The translations under genes were made by a program, and so were the position numbers. From the NCBI GenBank assembly GCA_001179505.1, contig CDMY01000291.1:62001-126000 (forward strand): 64,000 nt of DNA. The letters are read 5' to 3'. The notes below the pieces were generated by a model. That model was not told the DNA's origin and did not search any database. It saw only the letters and a program-made list of their open reading frames with translations. Positions 12,503 to 53,356 of the stretch are shown here, one piece after another; the stretch's first letter is position 1; every line of letters starts with the position of its first letter. This DNA comes from Vitrella brassicaformis CCMP3155 (lineage: Eukaryota; Protista; Chromerida).

Positions 12503-13018
12503 CGTTGGTCGCGAACACCACCAGCCAGCTACTGACGAGGTCGCTGCAAGGGAGGCGGAACGCCGCTACACCTCAGCTACCTGCAACACACACAGACACA
12601 CAACGCAACGCACACCACTGGTCGGTCCCCTCTCGTGCAGTCAGCAAACAGGCAGGCAGTGGCACCACCATCGCCTCCTTCACCAGCCACAAGCGCAAGC
12701 ACCTGCATTTTGCCATTCCTTTCGGCCCCTTGTGGTGTGTCGAGGTCGGGCAGCTGTCTGCGCGCACCTGAGAGGCCGCGAGAGGCGGCGTGCGCACCGC
12801 GCCGATGAGTCGGTCAACCGCAGTTGTGAAGGTACAGCCACGTGACGGCCGTTAGGAAAGGGCGTCGAAAAAAGAGAATAAGACCATCAAAGGCCTCGCC
12901 AGTCAATCTACGTAATCTCGTCAAATTCAGCTGGTACCGGCAGACGAAAGATCGCGAGCTTGCCCGCAGTGTTGTTGACCGTTCGAGATCTGGCACAGAG
13001 AAGCTTAGGCCTGCACCG

Positions 13019-14373
13019 ATGGGCAGTACCAAGAAGCCTGGCATGACTGCAGAGCTGCAGGTGCACGAAAGAAGGAGCATTAAACACGATGCTGTGACTG
13101 TGTTGCTGTGTGGTGCGTGCAGTCGCTGTACGATGACATCAAGGCAGCGATGCCGCAGCAGCGGCAAAACTACGACAAGTGGCTACTGACGCTGCCCGAC
13201 GACTTGAAGAAGTCGCTGGTGGGTGACCTCGAGGCCATCGGCCTCTCACTCGACGTGGCCTCGGGCCGCGTGAGCTACATGCCTTCGTTTGAGCCCGTCA
13301 AGCTGCCCTACGAGCTGTGCTACATCAGACACGGCAAGACCGAAGGCAACACGGAGCCGCGCATCTACCAGGTGAGAGGGCAGACAAGCACGCTGCCCCT
13401 TGAGTGAGATGCATCTTTGTCTGTTTGTTTATGGTTGGTTGCAGGGACAGGTGGACTATCCTGAGAACCAAATCAACGAGATCGGCATCCAACAGGTCAC
13501 CCTCACGCATTTCACACGCTAATTTTACTGCATGCATGAGCCATGAACCCTGCTGCTGTGCTCTGTTCTGTGTGCTGATGTAGGCCGAGGAGGCAGCTGA
13601 CAAGATGGAGGCCGAGTACCAGAAGGGGTGGAAGCCCGACCTCATCGTATACAGCCCACTCGGACGGGCTAAGGTCACTCACACAACAATCGCCAACCTT
13701 TGTACACCCACACACCCACTCCGGCCTAATGTTGTGGCTGTGGTTGTCTCCTCCCTCAGCACACGGGCGAGGCGTTTGCCAAGCGGCACCCGGACATCCC
13801 CACTGTCGTCGTCGACGCCACCAAAGAGATGGCATTCGGCGAGTGGGACAACCTCATGGTACCCACACACCACACCACACACACCATGAGCACAGTCATC
13901 CATCTGTGTCGCGTGACGTCACTCCCCCAGGTGAAGGATTTGTGCAAGACGAGCATCGGGCACCTGTTTTACCTGGAGCAGAACGCCATGGTCAAGCCCG
14001 ACGTGCCGCACAGCAGCCCCTCGGGACCCATACCGGCCGAGAACTTCTGCCAAGTGCTCATCCGACTCAGGCAGGCACTCACCGACATCGGCAAGATGCC
14101 GCATCTGCAGGGAAAGCAACACGCCAAGGTGACAAGACACACACACACGCACGAGAAACATTCTCTCTCACATCTCTCTCTGTGTTAGTGCGTTTGTTTG
14201 TGTAGGTGTTGATGTACGGGCATTCGATGGCGGGTGCGGCAGTGCAGATGCTGTTGGGTCACGGGATGGGCGACGAGAAGGGCTTGGGGTTCGACGGAAG
14301 GTACATCATGCCCAACGCCACGCCCTACATGCTGCCAGCCAAGAAACCTGACACCATCAACAAGGGCGGCTAG
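13019..14373 (+). CDS. Histidine phosphatase (phosphoglycerate mutase-like superfamily) protein
   Basis: Spliced protein has LCYIRHGKTEGN (RHG motif), YSPLGRAK, EMAFGEWD and VLMYGHS; ATG 13019, TAG 14371-14373. Confidence 0.85.
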
Positions 14374-16499
14374 GGTAGGGGAGGTGTGGGTGTACTGCTG
14401 CTAGTAGGGCAGAGCGGGGCGGGACGGAGTGAGGTAGGGGTATTTTGTGGTGCGTGGGGATTGGTGGCCCGGGTGGTGTCTGTCTGTCTATGGATGGATG
14501 GATGTGCTCCCCTTGCTCACAGTTTTGGCAGTTTTCCGTGGTTTCTTGATGTGTTCGTGCGGTGGTGCAGTTTCTTGCGTGTCGATACCTACCTACCCGA
14601 CGGACATGTCCACTTGTGTTCCACGCGATGATTGATGACCTGTGGACGCTGCCTTCACGTAACACCTCTCCCCTCTCCTCCCTCCCCTGGATCCCTCGGG
14701 TAACCCAACCACTCACATGCATACACGCTCACAAAATGGACGCAAACAAGGTCGCAAGTCGACTTTTACACCACCACGACACGCAACGCTGCTGGCTGGC
14801 TGTCACGGGCAGACACACACACGACCAGTTAGTTGTCCATTCCCCCCCTCCCTGAGACACACACACTCTCACACACACACACACACACACGCACACACAC
14901 TGCAGTCGGTCGAGGCATGCATCCATCCCAACTGCACTGCAAGTCAGCAAATCGGTCTGTGGACGAATTAGGTACGTACGGTATGTGTGAAGCTGGCTAC
15001 CGGTCAGTCAGTCAGTCAGTCAGGTCACTCACGCCCGTCGACGAAGCCACTCACCGACTAAAACTGCCTAACTGGTTGTTTGGTTGTTTGTTCGAAACGG
15101 ACCCCAAAAAGGCAAAACGACCCGCCCGCACCCCCACCAACCAGCCAGTCGGCCACTCCACTCCCCTCTCTCTGAAACGCAGCTTTCACCTGCCCTGGAT
15201 CGGTCGGTCGTTGGGTCCACCAGTCATGCAGCCAGCATGCACACGCGGAAGGCACCACACCACACCAGGCAAACAACGAGTCTTGAAAACGTCGTCTCGT
15301 CCAGTCCAAAGGAAACGACCGCACCGCACACGGCAACTAGAAAAGGGCGCGTTGACAACCAAACCAAGCGTCCCCACGTCTCTCCGTGTGTCCAGGCAGG
15401 TTTTAAGAAGGTGGCGTGACATACGTCTGTGTGTGTATGTGATCGATCATGCATCATCATACACCTTGCTACGCACCGACCTGCCTGTCTCTGCCGGATT
15501 CTCTCTCCCCCCTCCCTGCCCCCCTCCCTCTCTCTCTGCCCCAACTAGCGTGCCGAAGCATGTCGTGAATTAAGCTGGTGAGTCGCTCGCGTGTGTGTGC
15601 ATCCCGGATGATCCCAGCCATATATGGCGGCGTGTGTGGTGTGTGTGGTGTGTAAATCGACTGAGTGACTGATTCGATACGTACCAAAACTGTCCCTCCC
15701 CGCACCTTACTTACCGTAGGGAGGGAGGTTATGTATGTACAACACGACAGACTGACAGCGCTCACACTCACGCACACGCACTTACCAGCGAGCATGACAG
15801 CCTGCAGCCAATGCAGTCAGCCACACCAAGCCAAGCCAGCCACGACACCAAAATGTGGGCAAGGTATCCCATCCCTCCACTCTCCCCTCCTCACATCCAG
15901 CCACATCACATCCATCACATGAGCGCTATCCACAAGAAACAGAGAGAGAGAGAGACATACGGGCATTCATCCAGTCTGCAAAAAGACAGAAATAAGCCAG
16001 CCAGGCACACAGAGCTGTCTGCCAGTGTCTGTCTGTTGTGCGGCCGTTGGTAATGGAATGGGATTGTATCGTCCCTCTGTTCAAAACGAGCGGAGGGAGG
16101 GTGGGACCTGTCAGTCTGTCTGCCTGTCTGCTATGGTGTACTGCCTACCTCCGCATGAACACCCCGTGCGTCCACGCCTCGTTCACGAGGCCTCTCAATT
16201 CCGGTCAGTCAGTCAGTCAGCCAGCCATTCGCGTATGTATGTACGTACGCATCAAAAAGACAGCCAGTGTGTCCACACACACGTGTGTGAGGTAGGCACA
16301 CAGCCAGACAGACAGACAGACAGCAAAAAAGCAATGGCGGACCGTACCCTACAGCCATTCCACTCATCCAGCCATTCCACTCATCCAGCCATCCACTCAT
16401 CCATCCATCCAGCCATGCAACATTCACGCACGTGAGTGTATTGCATTCCATGTGTTGGATGTGGTGTGTGTGGGTGAGTTAGTCTGTGTGTCTGTCAGT

Positions 16500-19400
16500 C
16501 TACTCGGCCCCGATTTCGTAGTTTCGGATGTTGCCGTAGTAGGCGTCGGTGAGAATCATCTTCAACTCGCGGACCAACGGGTAACGGGGATTCGTGCCAG
16601 TGCACTGACAGACAGACACCATATATATAGCCACACACAAATGTGTCTATCTGTGTATGTGTGTGTATGTGTGTGGGTGAGAATGATTACCCACCTGGTC
16701 GTCGAATGCCCTGAGTGCCATGTCGTCGACGGCGGCCATGTAGTCGTCCTCTTTGACGCCGTACTCCTGGATGGACTTGGGGATCCGCAACTGCTCCTTC
16801 AGCTTCTCCATCGCAGCAACCAACGCATCCACCTGCACACAACACACAACACAGCACCATCATGCTCTCTCTGTGGCCATGATCAGGGTCTGTCTGTCTG
16901 TTCGGTCTCTTCGCGCTGGTTACTTACTTTCTCAGCGTCCGTCATGGATTTGTCCTTTGGTACGATGGCGATGTGCTCGGCCACCTCGGCGTACTGGCGC
17001 TGTGCCTTGGGGAAGGAGTACTGGGGGAAGGTCCCCAACTTGGTCGGCGCCTCGCTAGCATTGAACTTGACCACCTACCGAGCCGCACACAGACACACAG
17101 ACAGACAGACAGACAGACAGAGATGCAGACAATGGAGAGGGGATGGAGGTGTGTGTGTGTGTGTCCACTCCACCTGTGTGAGGACGAGTGCGTTTGCGAG
17201 TCCGTGTGGGATGGAGAACGCGCCACCCAACTGATGAGCTATCGAACTGACAACCACACAGCACAACACAAATGCCTACAGTCAGTCCATGGCTGGATGT
17301 GTCGTGTCGTGTGGTGTAGCTGACTGGCAGATGCCGAGGAATGCGTTAGCGAATGCGAGTCCGGCGATGGAGGAGGCATTGTGCATGTTCTCGCGGGCGG
17401 TGGCGTCGGCCTCGAGCACCGACTTGGGCAGGTTGTCGAATATCAACTTGATCGCACGCAGACTCAAGGCCTGGGTGTAGTCCTGGCAACACACACACAC
17501 ACACACACGTGAGCCACACACCAGACAAAACAAAACGCCCGACAGATGCGATCGATGGAGGGATGCCGTACGTACCGTCGAGAGCATGGACACGTAGGCC
17601 TCCAACGCATGAGTGTAGGCGTCGTAGCCCGTGAACGCTGCCAGACCCTAGACACACAACACACACAGACAGACATTCACACCAATTTCTTTCCTCCCTC
17701 TCCGTGGGGTGTGTGTGTGTGTGTCATTAGGTCATTCTGTGGACTCTCTCACTCACTCACTGACCTTTGGCATGGTCTGGACGAAGTCGCCGTCCATGAT
17801 GGCCATGTCGGGTGTCAGGCGGTAGGAGGCGATGGGGTACTTGGTGTGTGTCTTGCTGTCCGTGATGACCGCAAACGGGGTCATCTCGGCACCAGTGCCC
17901 GACGTCGTGGGGATCATCACCAATTTCTTCACCTTGCTGCCCAGATTCGGAAACCTGCACACACAAACACATACCCAACACAAACCGCATAAAGAATGGG
18001 TGCTGGCTCTCTCCCTCCCTCCCTCGGTGTGTCCGTCCGTGTCTCACTTGATGATGCGCTTGCGGATGTCGAGGAAGCGCGTGTAGAGCTCAGGGACGGT
18101 GACCTCGGGGTGCTCGTACACCAGGCGCATGATCTTGGAGGCGTCCATGGGGGAGCCGCCGCCGAATGCGATCATGCAGTCGGGCTTGTACTGCTTCATA
18201 CGCTCCACACCCGCCATCACCGTCAGGTCGTCGGGGTCGGGCTTGACGTCGGCAAACACCTACACACGCGTAGGCACACACACGGAGAGAGAGAGAGAGA
18301 GAGAGAGGAATCCATGCGACACACAGATGGATGGCATGCAAGGAGGGTTCTGATTTCTGTTTTGCTCACGTCATAGTCAATGCCACGTCGCTCCAGGGCG
18401 GTCGTGAGCAGCGAAACGTATCCCAGCGACTTCATGGCCTGACCAACGGAACCAACGAACGACATGGGCGGTGCCGTGCAGTCGAGTTACATTTGTGAGT
18501 GCTGACCTGGTCGGTGACGATGAATGCCTTCGTGAGTCCGTATCCCTGCAGGTCCTCCATCGCCTCGTGCAGGATGCCGCGGTTGAAGTAGATGGCCGGC
18601 GGCACCTTGAACCACAACATGTGCTCGCGACGCTCAGACACCTGCACACACACACACAGAGATAAAGGGAGCCGTATATTGGTGCGTAGGCGGATCGAGG
18701 CACACACATCTGATGCATCAATGGAAAAACGGGGGGCTACCTAACTGACTCTCTCTCTGTCTGTCTGTCATGCAAGTCGTCCATCCATACCCTTTCTGCT
18801 CTGTCTTGTGGCCAGAGTGTGGCCGGGTCAACGACAACAACACTGTCGCCGCCTCCCTACACCCATCCATTTCATCCAGCCCCCCACATGCATCACACCA
18901 ACCAGCCTCCCTCCCACCCTCCCTAACTCATTCACTCACTGCCCCCACACATCCTTGTTCAGTTGACCCACCTGTTTGTAGTTGAGGAGGTGTTTGACCG
19001 ACAGCCCCTCGGCCGTGGCGTTCATGCCCCACGAGCCGCACCCGAGGGACAGCGATGGGCTGGTGCGGAAGTTGTAGAGGTCTCCGATGGCGCCCTGGCT
19101 GGTGGGCATGTCGACGAGCACACGGCCGGTGGGCATGCGGCTCTCGAACTTGGCCAGCCGGTCCTTGAAGACCTTGGAGTTCTGGTCGCTGTACAGACAC
19201 GACGTGTGGCCCATACCGCCGTAACGCACACACACGTACGCCATCTCCACCGCCGCGTCGAAATCCGGAACCCTGCACCAAACCAAACAGAGAGGAGAGG
19301 GAGGGAATATTAACACGTTACGTGGTGTGTTGTGTTGTGTTGTGGGTGGATGGGATGGCGTGTGTTGTGTACGTGATGAAGGAGAGGCATGGGCAGAGCT

Positions 19401-21008
19401 TTTCGTGTGAGAGTTTCTCCGAAGGCCCGATCTCCTTGATCTTGCCGAGGCAGAGGCGGACGCCCTTGGGAGCGCCCTCGATGTTGGCCATCTGGCAGAG
19501 CTTCTCGGCCGTCTGCCCAACCGCCTTGGGATTCAGACGGTCGCCGTCCAGCAATATGAAGTCGCCCATCTGATCAGTGTACAGGACAGCAAAGCACTGT
19601 GTGCGGCGTGGCGTGTGTGGCATGTGTGGGGGGGATGGGTACCTACCTTGTGTTTCTCCTCCTCGGTCAGGAAGTAAGCGCCTCGCTTCGTGAACTCCTC
19701 CTCCACCCGCTTGGCCACAGACTCGACAGCTACCACGCACTGATCACACACACACGACACACAATGGACCGACCGCTCCTCCATCCATGTGTATTCGTTG
19801 TCGGGTGTGTCGCGTCACCTGTTCGCTGGCGCAGATCATGCCGCAGTCGAATGTCTTGCTGAGGAGGATGGAGTTGACGGCCAGCGGGATGTCGGCCGTC
19901 TCGTCGATGACCGCCGGGGTGTTGCCCGCGCCACCGCCCATCGCTGGCTTGCCTGACGAGTACGCCGCCTTGACCAACCCTCCAGCACCTACACACAAAC
20001 ACATAAGGAGTGTGTCTGCTTAGGACGAATGTGTGCACTCTCGTGTGTGTGTGTGTGTGTGTGTTTGTGATGATGAGGGGCAGGTACCTACCAGTGGCGA
20101 CGACCATGGAGGCCCTCTTGTGCTGCATGAGCGTGTTGCACATCTCGACAGTGGGGATGTCGATCCAACCGATGCAGTTCTCAGGCGCGCCAGCATCAAC
20201 GGCCGCATCCCTAACACACAACACAACACAACACAACAAGACGATAACAAAGATGCGTTCTGTGTGTCTGTGGCCTCACGAGTGCCCCCCTCCCCCCGCA
20301 CACGCACCTGACGATCTTTGCGGTGGCGATGGTGCACCGTGCGGTGCGTGGGTGCGGCGAGAAGACGATGCAGTTGCGGGTCTTGAGCGCCAGGAGTGAC
20401 TTGAAGATGGTCGTCGATGTGGGGTTGGTGCAGGGCACGATGCCCGCCAGCACACCGATGGGCTCCGCCACTACCTCGAAGCCGCCGGCCTCATCACGGT
20501 CAACCACACCACAGGTCTTGGTGTCCTTGTACCTGCAGGTATGTACCACACCACACACAAGACACACCACATCACCCACACCGAACATGACGCGGCCCGG
20601 TGCGTGTGCGTGTGTGATGCATGCCATGCCATGGGTCACCCACTTGCTGTGGACGTATTCGGAGGCGAAGTGGTTCTTGATGGTTTTGTCCTCCAGGATG
20701 CCCATGCCGCCCTCCTCGACGGCCATCTTGGCGAGCGGCACACGGTGCTGGGCGGCAGCAGTGGCGGCACGGTGGAAGATCTTGTCCACCTGCTCCTGGT
20801 TCAACAAACGCATCTTGTCCTGCGCAACGTACACCTGAACAACAGTCACAGACAACACAACGACACGATAAGAGAACGGACACGTGGGGCTTTTGGTGTC
20901 TGTTGTGCGTGTGTGCTATGTGCAGCTGACCTCTTCCATGAGGAGGTCGAGGTCTGCGGGCGTCCTGACGACGCCCACACTCTGAGAGGGCTGCACCTCT
21001 TGGGCCAT
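16500..21008 (-). CDS. adhE: Bifunctional acetaldehyde-CoA/alcohol dehydrogenase (AdhE)
   Basis: ALDH half: [37 protein letters not shown]. Linker: SLGCGSWG...KHLLNYK. Fe-ADH half: [59 protein letters not shown] 21008, TAG 16500. Confidence 0.96.
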
Positions 21009-21252
21009 GCTGTGCTGTCACTCAATCTCGATGATGTACAACACTACTAAGCTACTCGGATGGGCTCTCAAACTCAAACAAGGTCAACAGCCTCTGAACA
21101 GCTGCTGCGATGCGTTCCGTGACGCCTTCCCAATGCGAGCTTAGTAGACCTGTGACCCAATTCATTGTGACTCGAGACAAGCGCGGAGAGCGTTGAGAGA
21201 TTTGCATCGTGATTGTTGAAGTGCGATAGAAGTTGTCGTGTCAATTGCAGCG
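21009..21252. promoter_or_regulatory. Putative bidirectional promoter shared by adhE and PFL
   Basis: 244 bp between two divergent ATGs, without the microsatellite runs seen in introns; function inferred from geometry only. Confidence 0.55.
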
Positions 21253-24200
21253 ATGCCGGCCCCTGTGATAGACGTGGAGGCGTACATCTCCCAGCAGCTG
21301 CCCACCCTGCTCTACGATGGCGACGGCAACTTCCTGGCGGGGCCAACCGACCGAACCAAAAAGGTACGCACCTACCGATGGATGGGATGGAAACCACACA
21401 CACAACAGACAGTGGAAGCAGCCATCCTTTGTGGTGTGTGGGTGTGTGGTTCAGGTGTGGACTAGGTGCACGGAGTTGCTGAAGGAGGAGCTGGCCAAGG
21501 GTGGCACACTCGACGTCGACAACAAAACCATCTCATACGTACGTACCAACACGCAAGCAATACACAGACGCACACAGAGAGGGAGGGAGGGAGGTGTGTG
21601 CGCATTGGGTGTCTGTGTGTCTGTGTGTCTGTCTGTGTGTTGTGTCAGGTGAATGCGTTTGGCGCCGGGTACATCGATAGGGAGAACGAGTTGATCGTCG
21701 GTCTGCAGGCTGACGCGCCCCTCAAACGCACCTGCAAGCCACACGGCGGCATCCGCATGGTCCAGGCGTCCCTCGAGTCCGTCGGATCTAAGCTAGACCC
21801 GCTCATGGAGGAGGTCAAACAACACAGCACAACACAACAGGGGATCTGATCTGTGTGTGTGTGTGTGTGTCTGTGCAGATCTTCACCAAGCACCGCAAGA
21901 CGCACAACCAGGGCGTGTTCGACGTGTACGATGACGAGGTAACCACCCAAACCACATCAAACACCCACATGGCATGCAACACAAGACCCTCATGTGTGTT
22001 GTGTCTGGGTGCATTGCCTCCCATCTGTCATTCATTCATGTGTTGTTGTGTTTGTCTGTCCTGCAGATGCGCGCGTGTCGTTCGGCTCACATCCTGACGG
22101 GTCTGCCGGACTCGTACGGCCGCGGCCGCATCATCGGGGACTACCGCCGCGTGGCCCTCTACGGCATCGACCTGCTCATCGAGGCCAAAAAGGCAGACAA
22201 GAAACTCATCGGACCAGAGATGTACACAACCAAAACCAATACATCGACCATCCCTCCGTCCATCCACCTGTGCCTGTGTGTGTGTGCGTGTGTGTGTGTG
22301 TGTCAGGAATGAGGACAATTTGCGTCTGCGTGAGGAGATCAGCGAGCAGATTTTGGCGTTCAACCAGCTCAAGGAGATGGGTATGGCGTACGGCATCGAC
22401 ATGTCCAAGCCGGCCCAGAACGCGCAGGAGGCCATCCAGTTCACCTACTTCGCATACCTTGGGGCCATCAAGGAGCAGGACGGCGCCGCCATGTCCCTCG
22501 GACGCATGGACTCCTTCTTCGAGACATACATCAGCAAGGACCTCGAGAAGGGATCCATCACGGAGGAGCGAGCACAGGTCGGTGGCGGTGGGGGCTGGGC
22601 GGCACTGACTTCATGTACGTACGTACGTACGTACGTCTGTGTGTGTGGTTGTGTTGTGTGCAGGAGTTGATAGACGATTTTGTGATCAAGCTGCGTTTGG
22701 TGCGCCACCTTCGCACGCCCGCATTCGAGGACCTCTTCTCAGGTCGGTTGGTGACGCATCGCATCGATACAGACATGGCAACATACATACATACATACAG
22801 CACAGCGCATTGCATCGATGTGTCTGCCTGGGTGCATATGTGTGTGTGTGGGTGGGTGGGTGGGTGGGTGTGCATCTGTCAGGGAATCCGACGTGGGTGA
22901 CGGCGGTGATTGGCGGCATCGATGACAAGGGCACCCACCAGGTCACCAAGACCTCATTCAGGTAAGCTACACACTCACTGACAGCAATACAAACACACTG
23001 CATACGACGCACACAGCACATGCCTCTCTCTCTCTCTCTCTGTGGTGGGTGTGGTGTGTGTTGGTTGTGTTGTATGTGAAGGATTTTGAACACGCTGTAC
23101 AACCTGGGCCCGGCTCCCGAGCCCAACATGACCGTCCTATGGAGCCAGACACTCCCAAAGGTAGGCACGCGCCGTACCATACGCCTCACACCACCCTCCC
23201 ACAGACACATACACGACACATGGCGTGGCATGGATGTCGTGTCTGTGTGTGCAGGGTTTCAAGGAGTACTGTGCCAAGGTTTCCATCGACACGTCATCCA
23301 TCCAATACGAAAACGATGGTGGGGCGGACGGAGGGGATGCGTGGACTGGACACAAATGTGATGTGCCTGCCTCGGTGCGGTGCGGTGCGTGTGTATGTGT
23401 GTTTGTTTTCGCATTCAGACGTCATGCGTCCGGTGTACGGGGCCGACTACGCCATAGCCTGCTGTGTGAGCGGAATGACCATCGGAAAGCAGATGCAGGT
23501 AAGGTACACACACACACACACACACACACATGACAGACAGACAGACATGTATGTGCCTTACCCCTGGCTGCTTGTGTGTGTCTTTAGTTCTTCGGTGCGC
23601 GTTGCAACCTCCCCAAGCTGCTCCTCTACACACTCAACGAAGGACGGGACGAAATCTCAGGTAGCTACATCCGCACCGACCGCAGCCACCTCCCTCCCTC
23701 CCTCCCTCCCTCCCTACGCACACTCAGCCATATGTTGTGGGTGTGGCGTGCGCATTTGATTTGTGCAGGCAAGCAGGTGGGTCCGAAGTTCAAGAAGTTC
23801 AAGGACGGTCCCTTGGACTTCGCCGAGGTGCAAGCTGAGTTCGAGAAGGCCCTCGACTGGCTCATGCGGGTGTACGCCAACACCATGAACTGCATCCACT
23901 ACATGCACGACAAATACTTCTACGAACGGCTCGAGATGGCCCTCCACGACAGCAATGTCCACCGCTTCATGGCCTACGGCATCGCTGGTACGTCGACCGA
24001 CCAGCAGCATAGCGTCGTGTGGATGTGTGTGTGTGTGGATCAGGCATATCTGTGATGGCTGACTCGTTGAGTGCGATCAGAGATGCCAAGGTGACGCCTG
24101 TGCGCGACGAGCGGGGCATCACGACGGACTTCAAGATAGAGGGCGAGTTCCCCAAGTACGGCAACGATGACGACAGAGTCGACGAACTCGCCAAATGGGT

Positions 24201-25000
24201 CACGAAAGGTACACTCACCCAGACGCCACGCACGGCACCAAAATGTGTTCTCGTCTGTCCACGCTCATCTGTATGTGTTGTGTATGCTATGTGTGTTAGC
24301 TGTGATCACCCGTCTGCGTCAGCACAAGACGTACCGCAACTCTGAGCCCACCCTGTCGGTCCTCACCATCACCTCCAACGTCGTCTACGGCAAGGCCACC
24401 GGATCCACACCCGACGGACGCAAGAAGGGAGAACCGTTCGCACCGGGCGCCAACCCAAGTAGCCCAACAACACAACACAACCACACACATGGCATGGCGA
24501 GGAACCAACCATTCCATTCCATGCCTGTCGGGTGTTGTGTGGTTTAGTGCATGGCCGTGATGCGAGTGGCGCGTTGGCATCGCTCAACTCGGTGGCCAAG
24601 TTGGACTACTCCGACTGCCGTGACGGCATCAGCAACACCTTCTCGCTCGTGCCCACGGCCATCGGCAAGGACGAGACGGCCCGCAAGGAGAACCTCACGG
24701 CACTCCTCGACGGATACTTCGGGCAGATGGCACACCACCTCAACGTCAATGTCCTCAACAGAGACACGCTGCTCGATGCCGTCGAGCACCCAGAGGTGCG
24801 CCTGGGTGCATGTGGCAACCGAGGGCAGCAACACCGCTGGATTCCTCCTCTCGTATCTCTCGTATGTGTCCGTTTCTCTGTGTGTGCAGAAGTACCCGCA
24901 GCTGACGGTGCGTGTGTCGGGTTACGCCGTGCACTTCAACCGGCTGACGCGCGACCAGCAGATGGAGGTCATCGGACGCACCTTCCACACAACCATCTGA
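21253..25000 (+). CDS. pflB: Pyruvate formate-lyase (formate C-acetyltransferase, glycyl radical enzyme)
   Basis: [48 protein letters not shown] (adjacent catalytic Cys pair), [39 protein letters not shown] (glycyl radical motif); ATG 21253, TGA 24998-25000. Confidence 0.97.
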
Positions 25001-27239
25001 CATACCACACACACTACAGACACACCGATAGACAGACAGATACCACACCACACGCACCTGCGCCCCGCCCGTGGATGAGTGAGTGAGTGTAACGAATTCG
25101 ACCCCTGTTGATTGTCGTGGGGAACGGATTCGTTCTTTTTCCTCAAGTACGTACCCAAATGGATGAGATGGATGGATGGATGGACGCACCCACGTGTGAT
25201 GTGTCGTGGTGGTGTGGGGTGTTGGCTTTTTCTTTTCGTCTGGCCGGCGAGTGGTAGCGAGTGCGAGTCAGTGCACTGGATGCAGCCTTTTACACAGCAC
25301 GCACAGGCAGTGTGCACCCACGTAACACACTGCCCGTACCCCTGATAAACCACGCGCAGCCCGTTTGTCTGTCTGCCTGCGCGTCCTCTCACCCAAATTT
25401 CTCGTGCCTGACTGTCTGTCTGTCTGGCTGGCTGTCCATGGGCTTATCTCTCTGTGATGTGAATACACACATACATACATACCGACCGCAATTCTCCCTT
25501 CGCATCGTGCCGTGGTGTGTGTGAGTGCCATTCATTGGTTTGTGCAGGTTTAAGTGATGGCATCCGTACACATACACACACATGGATGGAGTGAGTGACG
25601 GTCGTGCGATGGACGTGCGGTGCAGAAAGGACATACGCTCGGACATTTATTCGCCTGACTGACTGACTGCCTGGCTGCCCGGCTGCCTGGCTGGCTGGCT
25701 GGCTGGCTGGCTGAGAGTCCAATCTTGACATCTTGTGTGACCAACTGACTTTGCGAGGTAAAGAGAAGGATACCGAGAGCGAGTGGATACATGCACACCT
25801 CCCCGCTCCCGAGTGAGTGACCAGTTTTGCCATCTTGATGCATTCTGCATGTACTCACGAAGACCGACCCGCCTGGCTGGCTGGCTGGCTGCCTGTATGC
25901 CCGTCCGTGATCGCTTGTCGTCCGGTTGATTGACCTTTTGTTGCGTCTGCGTGGAGGGATGAGAAGAGTAGTGGATGGCGAGCCCCCCAGCCGCAGCCTC
26001 AACTCGCCCGTTAGCTGCATGACATGGTGGTGGTGTTTTCAATGCCGGCCCTGTTGTGTGTGCGTGTGCGCCGCCACGACCCCTCGCCCCTCGCTCTCTC
26101 TCCCTTGGCTTGACGACCACCCCCGAGGCACGACTAGCTGGCGAATGAGCGGCGGGGACAGTGCTGGTGGGCGGCTCGGGGAGGGGAAGAGAGAGGGGGG
26201 ATGAGAGGAGGACTGACTGGGCATCTTGTTAACGCTCATGGATGGCGTCCATGCATGCATTCATACATGCGCCTGCATCCCTCCCTCCCTCCCTGTCTGT
26301 CTGCCTGCCTGTGTGACTGTCTGGATCTCGAATTAGAGTAGAGAGAGAGCCAGCCAGGTGGCAGGGAGCGAGGGAGGGAGGGAGGGAGTTGGCATTGCTG
26401 TGTGGGTGTTTGCTCCCCTCGACACACACGACTCGGAGAGAGGAGCTGCACCAGCAAGCAACGTCACTCACTCCAGGCAGGCAGGCCACAGGCCAGGCCG
26501 GCGGGCGTGGTATGCTGTGCCTTTTTAGTAGTAGCCAAAGAAACAAGAGACAGACACCAACGAGCTAGTTCTCACGTGGTTCTGTGTGTCGGACTCAAAG
26601 AGCATCAGGGTCAAACTCAAAAGGTATCACACACGCATCGTTGGTGCTGCTGTCCCGTCCGCATTTCACCCGACACACCCAATGGCCATCTGGCATTTCA
26701 CTTCCAAGGCGCAAAAATGATTTACTTGCGTTGGTGCCGTCACAGACCAATGACCCACACCATGGGTAGAGTTTTGCAAAGAGTTGTGGTTGAGTGTAAC
26801 AAATCCATTGTTGTCTCACCTCACCCGAGTGTCTCCCTCCCTCCCTCCCTCCCACCCACCATCGCCATCTCTCATCAACACCGACACAGCACAAGCATCT
26901 GTCTGCTCGAGGAGCGCACAGCAGGTCAAAATCTGGCCGAGCCCCCACTACTGGCCCACACGCAATCATATGTCCATTCGGCTCCTTCCTCGCCGCGGGC
27001 ACAAAAACTTACCCAAGGCGAGAAAGAAAGAAACGCACGTCGCAACCGTCACAATATCATCGAGTCTCTACGTGTGTACGTCAGTGGCGCAAGTCACTCA
27101 CACTTCTGTCTGTGTCACACCTCTTGCATGACACGAATACAGACCGTGCGAAGGCTGGATAAACGCAATAAGTCATCTATTGTCTCACTTCCTTCCCTCC
27201 ATGACATGACAACCACGAGCGGCACTCACTGTCTGCCCC

Positions 27240-53056: not shown

Positions 53057-53356
53057 NNNNNNNNNNNNNNNNNNNNNNNNNNNNNNNNNNNNNNNNNNNN
53101 NNNNNNNNNNNNNNNNNNNNNNNNNNNNNNNNNNNNNNNNNNNNNNNNNNNNNNNNNNNNNNNNNNNNNNNNNNNNNNNNNNNNNNNNNNNNNNNNNNNN
53201 NNNNNNNNNNNNNNNNNNNNNNNNNNNNNNNNNNNNNNNNNNNNNNNNNNNNNNNNNNNNNNNNNNNNNNNNNNNNNNNNNNNNNNNNNNNNNNNNNNNN
53301 NNNNNNNNNNNNNNNNNNNNNNNNNNNNNNNNNNNNNNNNNNNNNNNNNNNNNNNN
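53057..53356. other. Assembly gap (300 N)
   Basis: Run of n characters. Confidence 1.

Follow-up and report, generated by a model that had tools for sequence, protein, structure and literature searches.

PFL (pyruvate formate-lyase, formate C-acetyltransferase, EC 2.3.1.54) and AdhE of the chromerid alga Vitrella brassicaformis CCMP3155 are encoded head to head within the window, i.e., the whole stretch of 64,000 nucleotides of contig CDMY01000291.1 that was analysed, and the evidence considered here makes it likely that the two genes constitute an expressed, divergent nuclear pair that shares a promoter region and results from the secondary, lineage-specific juxtaposition of two old genes. 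PFL converts pyruvate to formate and acetyl-CoA, while AdhE converts acetyl-CoA to ethanol with regeneration of NAD+; the proposal of the first-pass annotation that these are consecutive steps of one pathway is borne out, PFL acting before AdhE and both genes being intact.

In the gene models (Table 1) all introns of the two genes (33/33) have GT–AG borders, neither frame contains internal stops, and the translations are identical at every residue to database proteins of the same strain (P0292 for PFL and P0174 for AdhE). Both genes had been annotated beforehand, as divergent neighbours, in assembly GCA_001179505.1 (CDMY01000291.1), and every intron is reproduced by spliced transcript contigs of five data sets (ERR558152, SRR646408, two JGI transcriptome assemblies and runs X10–X13), L170–L173 being the contigs used to check the AdhE introns and L170 covering all those of PFL. 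Models, public proteins and transcripts agree with the earlier description of an intact AdhE on the minus strand and an intact PFL on the plus strand with ATGs 244 bp apart. Furthermore, runs of six studies yield one and the same sequence for the locus, its GC content and intron style resemble those of the rest of the scaffold, and one RNA-derived contig (L170, from ERR558152) crosses the inferred promoter core unbroken and is spliced in both genes. These properties, together with the number of spliceosomal introns, reduce to a practically negligible level the probability that an assembly artefact or bacterial contamination united the two genes, a premise in favour of which nothing was found. 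The bridging contig itself could stem from divergent transcripts that overlap, or from genomic DNA present in traces. On the AdhE side, some contigs extend further than the 3′ UTR given in Table 1, to 14872 and 14204, where they fuse with the convergent neighbour.

Table 1. Coordinates (positions of the window) of the features of the PFL/AdhE locus
Feature	Position	Strand	Details
AdhE gene, CDS start to stop	16500-21008	-	18 exons, 890 aa; spliced protein-to-DNA alignment vs E. coli AdhE
AdhE exons 1-9	21008-20931, 20834-20644, 20532-20308, 20210-20092, 19988-19819, 19739-19647, 19569-19373, 19272-18972, 18641-18507	-	
AdhE exons 10-18	18438-18370, 18259-18048, 17954-17765, 17647-17576, 17482-17325, 17246-17174, 17074-16928, 16832-16695, 16604-16500	-	
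AdhE 3′ UTR	15836-16499	-	at least 664 nt; contigs L173, L170, L171, L172
AdhE 5′ UTR	21009-21134	-	contig 5′ ends 21094, 21123, 21134 (L173, L172, L171; X11, X12)
Spacer between start codons	21009-21252	.	244 bp; shared promoter region and the two 5′ UTRs
Inverted repeat, left arm	21044-21053	.	CTACTAAGCT; perfect, 10 nt
Inferred bidirectional promoter core	21095-21165	.	stretch between and around the outermost contig 5′ ends
Inverted repeat, right arm	21138-21147	.	AGCTTAGTAG; between the outermost AdhE (21134) and PFL (21150) 5′ ends
PFL 5′ UTR	21150-21252	+	contig 5′ ends 21150, 21166 (X11 record 3, X12 record 5)
PFL gene (formate C-acetyltransferase), CDS	21253-25000	+	17 exons, 733 aa; spliced protein-to-DNA alignment vs E. 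coli PflB
PFL exons 1-9	21253-21363, 21455-21538, 21649-21813, 21879-21938, 22067-22221, 22307-22577, 22664-22742, 22883-22961, 23082-23160	+	
PFL exons 10-17	23255-23318, 23419-23498, 23588-23660, 23769-23987, 24044-24208, 24300-24458, 24548-24795, 24890-25000	+	
PFL 3′ UTR	25001-25710	+	at least 710 nt; L170 maps unbroken 24888-25710

The PFL product displays Pfam domains PF02901 and PF01228 on its 733 aa and aligns with residues 37–756 of E. coli PflB; the catalytic residues C397 and C398 (in IACCVSG) and the radical glycine G708 (in RVSGYAV) are kept, the conserved Arg and Trp residues are likewise present, and the identity of 63–75% with named formate C-acetyltransferases qualifies the protein as a true PFL rather than another glycyl radical enzyme. 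In AdhE, PF00171 and PF00465/PF25137 are fused in one polypeptide that aligns with residues 3–870 of E. coli AdhE; the ALDH nucleophile C257 and the iron ligands D669, H673, H737 and H751 are retained, as is GGGSPMD at residue 559, and on the basis of its domains and residues the protein is a bifunctional acetaldehyde-CoA dehydrogenase/Fe-alcohol dehydrogenase. Neither pflA nor focA was found within the window; PFLA is scored as present in Vitrella in a review table (PMC8003979), and PflA, the activating enzyme required by PFL, would be encoded elsewhere in the genome.

The spacer has a GC content of 0.50, compared to ~0.57 in its surroundings. Contig 5′ ends, which only approximate transcription start sites and belong to contigs carrying no readable RNA strand, place the beginnings of the AdhE and PFL mRNAs ~15–70 bp apart. 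In the AdhE 5′ UTR in-frame stops are located 5′ of the ATG, in that of PFL an in-frame stop occurs at 21217, and both are devoid of upstream ATGs; the PFL 5′ UTR is continuous with exon 1, so that an upstream exon is lacking. Since both mRNAs begin within a ~70-bp stretch of the spacer, one short promoter region drives both directions; indeed, as in bidirectional promoters, the genes are divergent and their starts, for which contig ends serve as a proxy, lie <1 kb apart. The arms of the perfect inverted repeat are 84 nt apart, and by our own estimate ~0.03 such pairs would be expected by chance in 261 bp.

From this layout the first-pass annotation had derived a shared bidirectional promoter forming an operon-like module. 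The first part stands, in that a single, very short region lies between two divergent genes with closely spaced 5′ ends, and some co-expression from this shared region is probable; the term “operon-like module” is an overstatement, because in Vitrella a divergent arrangement across a tiny spacer is the norm, and in other organisms it usually goes along with only modest co-expression. A selected module of this type, with a bidirectional promoter induced specifically by hypoxia or darkness and both enzymes rising and falling together, is in our opinion unlikely, even though the consecutive reactions catalysed, the proximity of the 5′ ends and the inverted repeat flanking the promoter core are what it would predict, and even though pathway partners are also found paired in other organisms, as in the head-to-head PFL/activase genes of Polychytrium and the cyanobacterial pflB-pflA-adhE tandem. 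The same can be said of the contig depths of AdhE/PFL, which lie close to each other in three runs (63/51, 93/118 and 27/30), these being few independent runs with a narrow range; in a fourth run the two genes are merged in one contig. On the other hand, both mRNAs were assembled from ordinary culture transcriptomes, and PFL and ADHE are expressed at ambient O2 in algae, Chromera among them (Gould et al. 2019). Furthermore, the layout is generic in Vitrella, the activase PflA lies outside the locus and the linkage is missing at the other eukaryotic loci compared (see below).

The architecture of the pair must be regarded as ordinary, because Vitrella combines a median intergenic distance of 92 bp with an excess of pairs arranged head to head (Woo et al. 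2015, PMC4501334); outside Vitrella such pairs usually display only modest co-expression (PMC4501334). Other adjacent divergent pairs on the same scaffold look alike, their coding sequences being 416 and 541 bp apart. These data, along with the lack of conservation at the loci compared, lend some credit to a pure chance adjacency in which the shared spacer has no regulatory effect beyond that of any neighbouring pair. How rare such an event would be depends on the set of genes considered: by our own estimates, the probability is ~2/22,817 = 9e-5 for one named gene pair (gene count from PMC4501334), a value (~1e-4) that speaks for a selected module, and ~0.004 for any pair among ~10 anaerobic-metabolism genes, whereas ~0.1–0.3 chance adjacencies are expected over all pathway-neighbour pairs of ~22,800 genes, and the occurrence of one such adjacency genome-wide is not very surprising. 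Chance alone is a conceivable, if doubtful, explanation, in light of the low expectation within the anaerobic-metabolism set, of the similar depths in three runs and of the fact that 5′ ends so close to each other can hardly avoid having chromatin and promoter context in common.

Linkage conserved in relatives, the property by which a metabolic gene cluster is recognised and for which a synteny search had been proposed, was absent from all five other eukaryote loci compared, namely those of the relative L175 and of four distant eukaryotes (L085, Barthelona, Polychytrium and Gonium). In L175, PFL was not found within 9 kb upstream of AdhE. No paper was found that describes a PFL-AdhE linkage in Vitrella. 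Among bacteria, pflB-pflA-adhE tandems occur in 7/80 genome loci, all seven being cyanobacterial, and in metagenome loci adhE is near pfl in 3/80.

The phylogenies of the two proteins gave different placements. Vitrella PFL is joined, with a support of 100, by the PFLs of Alphamonas edax (75% identical) and Platyproteum (69% identical), and this group lies within a eukaryote PFL clade (support 96) that includes chlorophytes, Pygsuia, Stygiella and a chytrid. Vitrella AdhE groups with its gregarine counterparts from Lankesteria (66% identity) and Ancora (57%), also with a support of 100, in a clade that contains only members of the apicomplexan lineage, the AdhE of Barthelona being placed elsewhere. 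As they belong to different clades, the two proteins have different histories. Furthermore, one AdhE intron is common, in both position and phase, to Vitrella and L175, an indication of long residence in nuclear genomes. The association of PFL with Alphamonas and Platyproteum, and that of AdhE with gregarines together with the common intron, therefore identify both genes as old residents of the apicomplexan/chrompodellid lineage.

A jointly transferred bacterial operon was considered and rejected as the source of the pair, the two proteins tracing to separate clades rather than to one donor. The joint lateral acquisition suggested earlier as a possibility is not supported, nor is the common donor for which the two trees were to test. 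Acquisition of one bacterial pfl-adhE operon, subsequently rearranged head to head and supplied with introns, is highly improbable: the bacterial linkage does exist, and the tree does not settle the bacterial sister of the AdhE clade, a sister-to-cyanobacteria constraint not being rejected (p-AU 0.20), but a tree in which PFL is made to group with the PFLs of the cyanobacterial clusters is worse by 241 log-likelihood units (p-AU 6e-94). Moreover, no bacterial lineage was found that has the two genes adjacent and is near Vitrella in both trees, and the intron common with the relative, the absence of pflA from the locus and the unlinked genes of L175 all speak against such a transfer. In keeping with the juxtaposition favoured here, the adjacency would represent a secondary, lineage-specific joining of genes that both had a long previous history in the apicomplexan/chrompodellid lineage, and it may have arisen in a genome whose default is the head-to-head pair with a tiny spacer.

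Neither an N-terminal targeting extension nor a hydrophobic N-terminus was found in PFL and AdhE; judged solely from this lack of an extension, Vitrella most likely runs its formate/ethanol branch in the cytosol. Chlamydomonas reinhardtii (PFL1/ADH1) is likewise an oxygenic alga with PFL and ADHE formate/ethanol fermentation (Stairs et al. 2011; reviewed in PMC8003979), and its two enzymes, as well as the chlorophyte PFLs, are organellar (PMC8003979). The PFLs of volvocine and other chlorophytes belong to the same eukaryote clade as that of Vitrella but, unlike the latter, have N-terminal extensions of 70–115 residues. A cytosolic as opposed to an organellar branch would bear on the compartments of anaerobic metabolism in the ancestors of apicomplexans.

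Both genes and their presence in chromerids were already known and their architecture is the genomic default, so that to this extent the locus is a tidy annotation note that holds no surprise. It would acquire a broader meaning should it prove to be a selectively maintained two-gene module with an oxygen- or light-sensing bidirectional promoter, serving a cytosolic branch and with a pairing common to chrompodellids such as Alphamonas or Chromera, a rather unlikely combination; such a maintained, chrompodellid-wide module would be an example, rare in eukaryotes, of a mini-cluster for anaerobic energy metabolism. Tight co-regulation, in turn, would make the pair a compact natural case of pathway partners governed by a common bidirectional promoter in an alga related to the apicomplexan parasites, and would also offer a two-way promoter convenient for genetic work in chromerids.

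Compared to known systems, PflB (b0903) and AdhE (b1241) of E. coli K-12 belong to the same enzyme families and perform the same chemistry as the Vitrella pair: AdhE is 53% identical over 875 residues, PFL ~55–60% over the aligned segments, and all catalytic residues are in common. Unlike the nuclear, intron-rich and head-to-head genes of Vitrella, pflB and adhE occupy separate loci in E. coli, pflB alongside focA and pflA. In the cyanobacterial pflB-pflA-adhE clusters (Pseudanabaena, Microcoleus and Phormidium; L113, L120, L131, L132, L136, L139, L140) PFL and AdhE are physically linked, as in Vitrella, but in a single-strand tandem with the activase in between, and the cluster PFLs are phylogenetically distant from that of Vitrella. 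In Polychytrium aggregatum (L178) PFL is also head to head with a functional partner, which is a radical-SAM activase rather than AdhE, across a spacer of ~1 kb, whereas in Gonium two PFL genes are arranged tail to tail and AdhE does not adjoin them. The PFL and ADH genes of Chlamydomonas are not known to be linked. The same alga is reported to possess, in HYDEF-HYDG, a divergent head-to-head pair of anaerobic-metabolism genes that are induced together; the layout corresponds to that of the Vitrella pair, the genes being different (hydrogenase maturases). Finally, the generic head-to-head pairs of Vitrella are likewise divergent, their members being separated by tens to hundreds of bp and sharing a promoter region; PFL/AdhE differs from them in that its partners catalyse successive steps of the same pathway, something that does not hold for such pairs in general.

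The window is GC-rich (about 0.57 in the composition profile) and its reading frames appear as short coding blocks interrupted by TG/CA-rich segments; tblastn with the E. coli AdhE and PflB sequences (L001 and L002) outlined one chain of such blocks on the minus strand at 16.5–20.8 kb and another on the plus strand at 21.6–25.0 kb. A dip in GC at 53–54 kb is an assembly gap (300 Ns at 53057–53356) and not a compositional island. Complete models of the genes for pyruvate formate-lyase (PFL) and the bifunctional acetaldehyde-CoA/alcohol dehydrogenase AdhE were obtained with a purpose-written protein-to-genome spliced aligner. The introns of both genes are all short (56–330 nt, n = 33) and conform to GT-AG in 33 of 33 cases; throughout 16500–25000 the CAG/TAG acceptor is preceded by a G/T-rich tract that is TG-rich instead of pyrimidine-rich, and the CA/TG repeats within the introns explain why ORF translations contain runs of "THTHTH" and "CVCVCV". 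The first-pass annotation, which had described an intact minus-strand AdhE and an intact plus-strand PFL with start codons 244 bp apart, is borne out by the spliced models in every detail.

Features of the PFL/AdhE locus (window positions)
Feature	Position	Strand	Basis or remark
PFL	21253-25000	+	17 exons, 733 aa; spliced alignment
AdhE	21008-16500	-	18 exons, 890 aa; spliced alignment
Spacer (ATG to ATG)	21009-21252		244 bp
AdhE contig 5' ends	21094 (SRR646408 and public run X11), 21123, 21134 (two JGI transcriptome assemblies)	-	mapped contigs
PFL contig 5' ends	21150 (X11), 21166 (public run X12)	+	mapped contigs
Inverted repeat arms	21044-21053 and 21138-21147		CTACTAAGCT / AGCTTAGTAG
Unspliced stretch beyond AdhE stop	14204-16499		2.3 kb
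Convergent neighbour of AdhE	exons at 12859-14131		His_Phos_1 gene

The database proteins of Vitrella brassicaformis CCMP3155 are identical to the models. The AdhE protein (P0174, 890 aa) was reached by a search seeded with the ALDH half of P0001, the transcript-derived protein of a relative, and the PFL protein (P0292, 733 aa) with the spliced RNA contig L170 as full-length reference. The genes as such are not new, since the public annotation of scaffold CDMY01000291.1 (GCA_001179505.1) already records PFL and AdhE as divergent neighbours.

The stretch is present in 16 public runs belonging to six studies, and the four runs placed on 18150–24149 yielded spliced contigs whose joints equal the modelled introns. 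Five contigs (L169–L173) were obtained by protein look-up and then mapped back; the four transcript contigs among them (L170–L173) reproduce 17 of the 17 introns of AdhE, and every one of the 16 in PFL is found in L170. The 5' ends of AdhE and PFL are separated by 15 bp if the outermost and by about 70 bp if the innermost are compared and, with contig ends that only approximate transcription starts and do not reveal the RNA strand, this leaves no room in the spacer for two separate promoters. One contig (ERR558152, 7457 nt) runs unbroken through the spacer and is spliced in both genes. In the only three runs with independent contigs the AdhE/PFL depths were 63/51, 93/118 and 27/30, values compatible with co-expression though far too few to show it.

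A 10-nt inverted repeat without mismatches flanks the region of both mRNA starts. The chance expectation for the stretch is about 0.03 such pairs, and the repeat may be a regulatory site common to both genes or simply coincidental. At the other end of AdhE, the transcript contigs continue unspliced past the stop codon until they merge with the convergent neighbour, which is spliced; this segment is either a very long AdhE 3' UTR, or an overlap of convergent 3' ends, or an unannotated transcript, and its opposite strand carries a called ORF of 218 aa. The other neighbours of the PFL/AdhE pair are this His_Phos_1 gene and a gene of 156 aa.

How unusual is such an arrangement? The median distance between Vitrella genes is 92 bp, and among closely spaced genes head-to-head pairs occur above chance (Woo et al. 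2015, PMC4501334); earlier work, as cited there, found head-to-head pairs to be mostly modestly co-expressed. In the divergent pairs flanking PFL/AdhE on the scaffold, the coding sequences lie 416 and 541 bp apart. In light of this spacing, of the head-to-head excess and of the flanking gaps, the architecture of the locus is ordinary: the shared bidirectional promoter suggested in the first-pass annotation finds support in the short distance between the 5' ends, while the "operon-like" layout attributed to it is that of the Vitrella genome in general. Only the functional relation of the two partners stands out. The chance adjacency of one named gene pair is about 9e-5, the expected number of chance adjacencies among roughly 10 anaerobic-metabolism genes is about 0.004 and that for all pathway-neighbour pairs genome-wide is estimated to be of the order of 0.1–0.3.

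The closest relatives of Vitrella PFL are those of Alphamonas edax (75% identity), one transcriptome protein (73%), Platyproteum vivax (69%) and Pygsuia (67%), followed by Stygiella, chlorophytes and a chytrid (64–66%) and by Firmicutes (63–65%); a metagenome scan with a PFL exon query returned bacterial PFLs only (52–64% identity) and no chromerid relative. In the trees the Vitrella/Alphamonas/Platyproteum group is fully supported and nests in a clade with all eukaryotes (support 96), in agreement with the single eukaryote PFL clade reported by Stairs et al. (2011). As to AdhE, identity is 66% and 57% with the gregarines Lankesteria and Ancora, 57–63% with four further eukaryote sequences and at most 57% with bacteria. 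Seven members, including Vitrella and the gregarines, form a fully supported clade (a reduced tree retained six of them), whose long stem arises among bacterial sequences with no resolved branching order; the Barthelona AdhE falls outside it. The AdhE of a eukaryotic genomic contig (L175:9132-11976, Logan SRR31860988, GC 0.45), 63% identical to that of Vitrella, has one intron only, equal in codon and phase to Vitrella intron 2. The search with a fragment of AdhE exon 3 had no hits other than frameshifted bacterial genes (L083, L084). In P0001 (L168, Logan SRR25454953) the ALDH half is near Vitrella AdhE (91% over exon 5) and the ADH half is diverged, without GGGSPMD and without an Fe-ADH Pfam match; the protein may be an AdhE deprived of alcohol dehydrogenase function.

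The tree placements and the intron common to L175 show both genes to be long established in the apicomplexan/chrompodellid lineage; that they contain introns calls for no special explanation. The earlier suggestion that they were acquired jointly from a common bacterial donor is not supported by the phylogenies and approximately unbiased (AU) tests. Tandem pflB-pflA-adhE does occur in 7 of 80 genome loci, all cyanobacterial, and adhE lies near PFL in 3 of 80 metagenome PFL loci; moreover, a cyanobacterial sister of the AdhE clade is not rejected (p-AU 0.20, with L071, which nests inside cyanobacteria, counted for that reason with the constrained group). However, cyanobacterial PFLs are far from Vitrella PFL in the trees, and a tree that forces Vitrella PFL to group with them loses 241 log-likelihood units and is rejected (p-AU 6e-94, the cyanobacterial group having been named post hoc with the tree already seen); no bacterial lineage combines adjacent pfl/adhE with a position near Vitrella in both trees.

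Nor was the linkage found in the other eukaryotes compared: PFL is absent from 9 kb upstream and 2 kb downstream of AdhE in L175 and is not a neighbour of AdhE at L085 or in Barthelona (L087), the upstream sequence of a further AdhE locus, L086, being too short to judge; AdhE is likewise absent beside PFL in the Polychytrium and Gonium loci. Other PFL neighbourhoods are a likely PFL activase (radical-SAM) gene head to head with PFL in the chytrid Polychytrium aggregatum (L178:7188-13451), two tail-to-tail PFL genes in Gonium pectorale (L179:10001-23966) and the conserved pflB-pflA-adhE tandem cluster of the filamentous cyanobacteria Pseudanabaena, Microcoleus and Phormidium (L113, L120, L131, L132, L136, L139, L140). 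Full-text literature searches returned no PFL-ADHE head-to-head pair for any eukaryote; no Chromera or Vitrella gene identifiers were found in PMC6668581, PMC4501334, PMC6732389, PMC6920818 or a 2026 preprint. The novelty is the adjacency alone. The favoured reading is that the pairing is secondary, having arisen in a compact genome between two genes each long resident in the lineage, and that one short bidirectional promoter region drives both, with products that are probably cytosolic; specific control by hypoxia or darkness is possible, as is selection for the linkage.

Both proteins carry their catalytic residues. In PFL these are the radical glycine of the RVSGY motif, the Cys-Cys pair and conserved Arg and Trp; in AdhE the GGGSPMD motif is present together with the cysteine of the ALDH domain and all four ligands of iron. 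Both ATGs are preceded by in-frame stops, without an upstream ATG. From the lack of any N-terminal extension or hydrophobic stretch in either N-terminus, and from the start point shared with the nearest PFL relatives, the pathway is predicted to be cytosolic. Relaxed tblastn and spliced alignment on both strands of the 64-kb window gave only noise for pflA and focA; according to a review table (PMC8003979), the Vitrella genome includes PFLA. Vitrella and Chromera are known to match Chlamydomonas in the completeness of their anaerobic enzyme set, and in Chromera both PFL and ADHE are expressed in air (Gould et al. 2019). Transfection has been described for Chromera (PMC12407925). Compared with Vitrella PFL, chlorophyte PFLs have 70–115 additional residues at the N-terminus.
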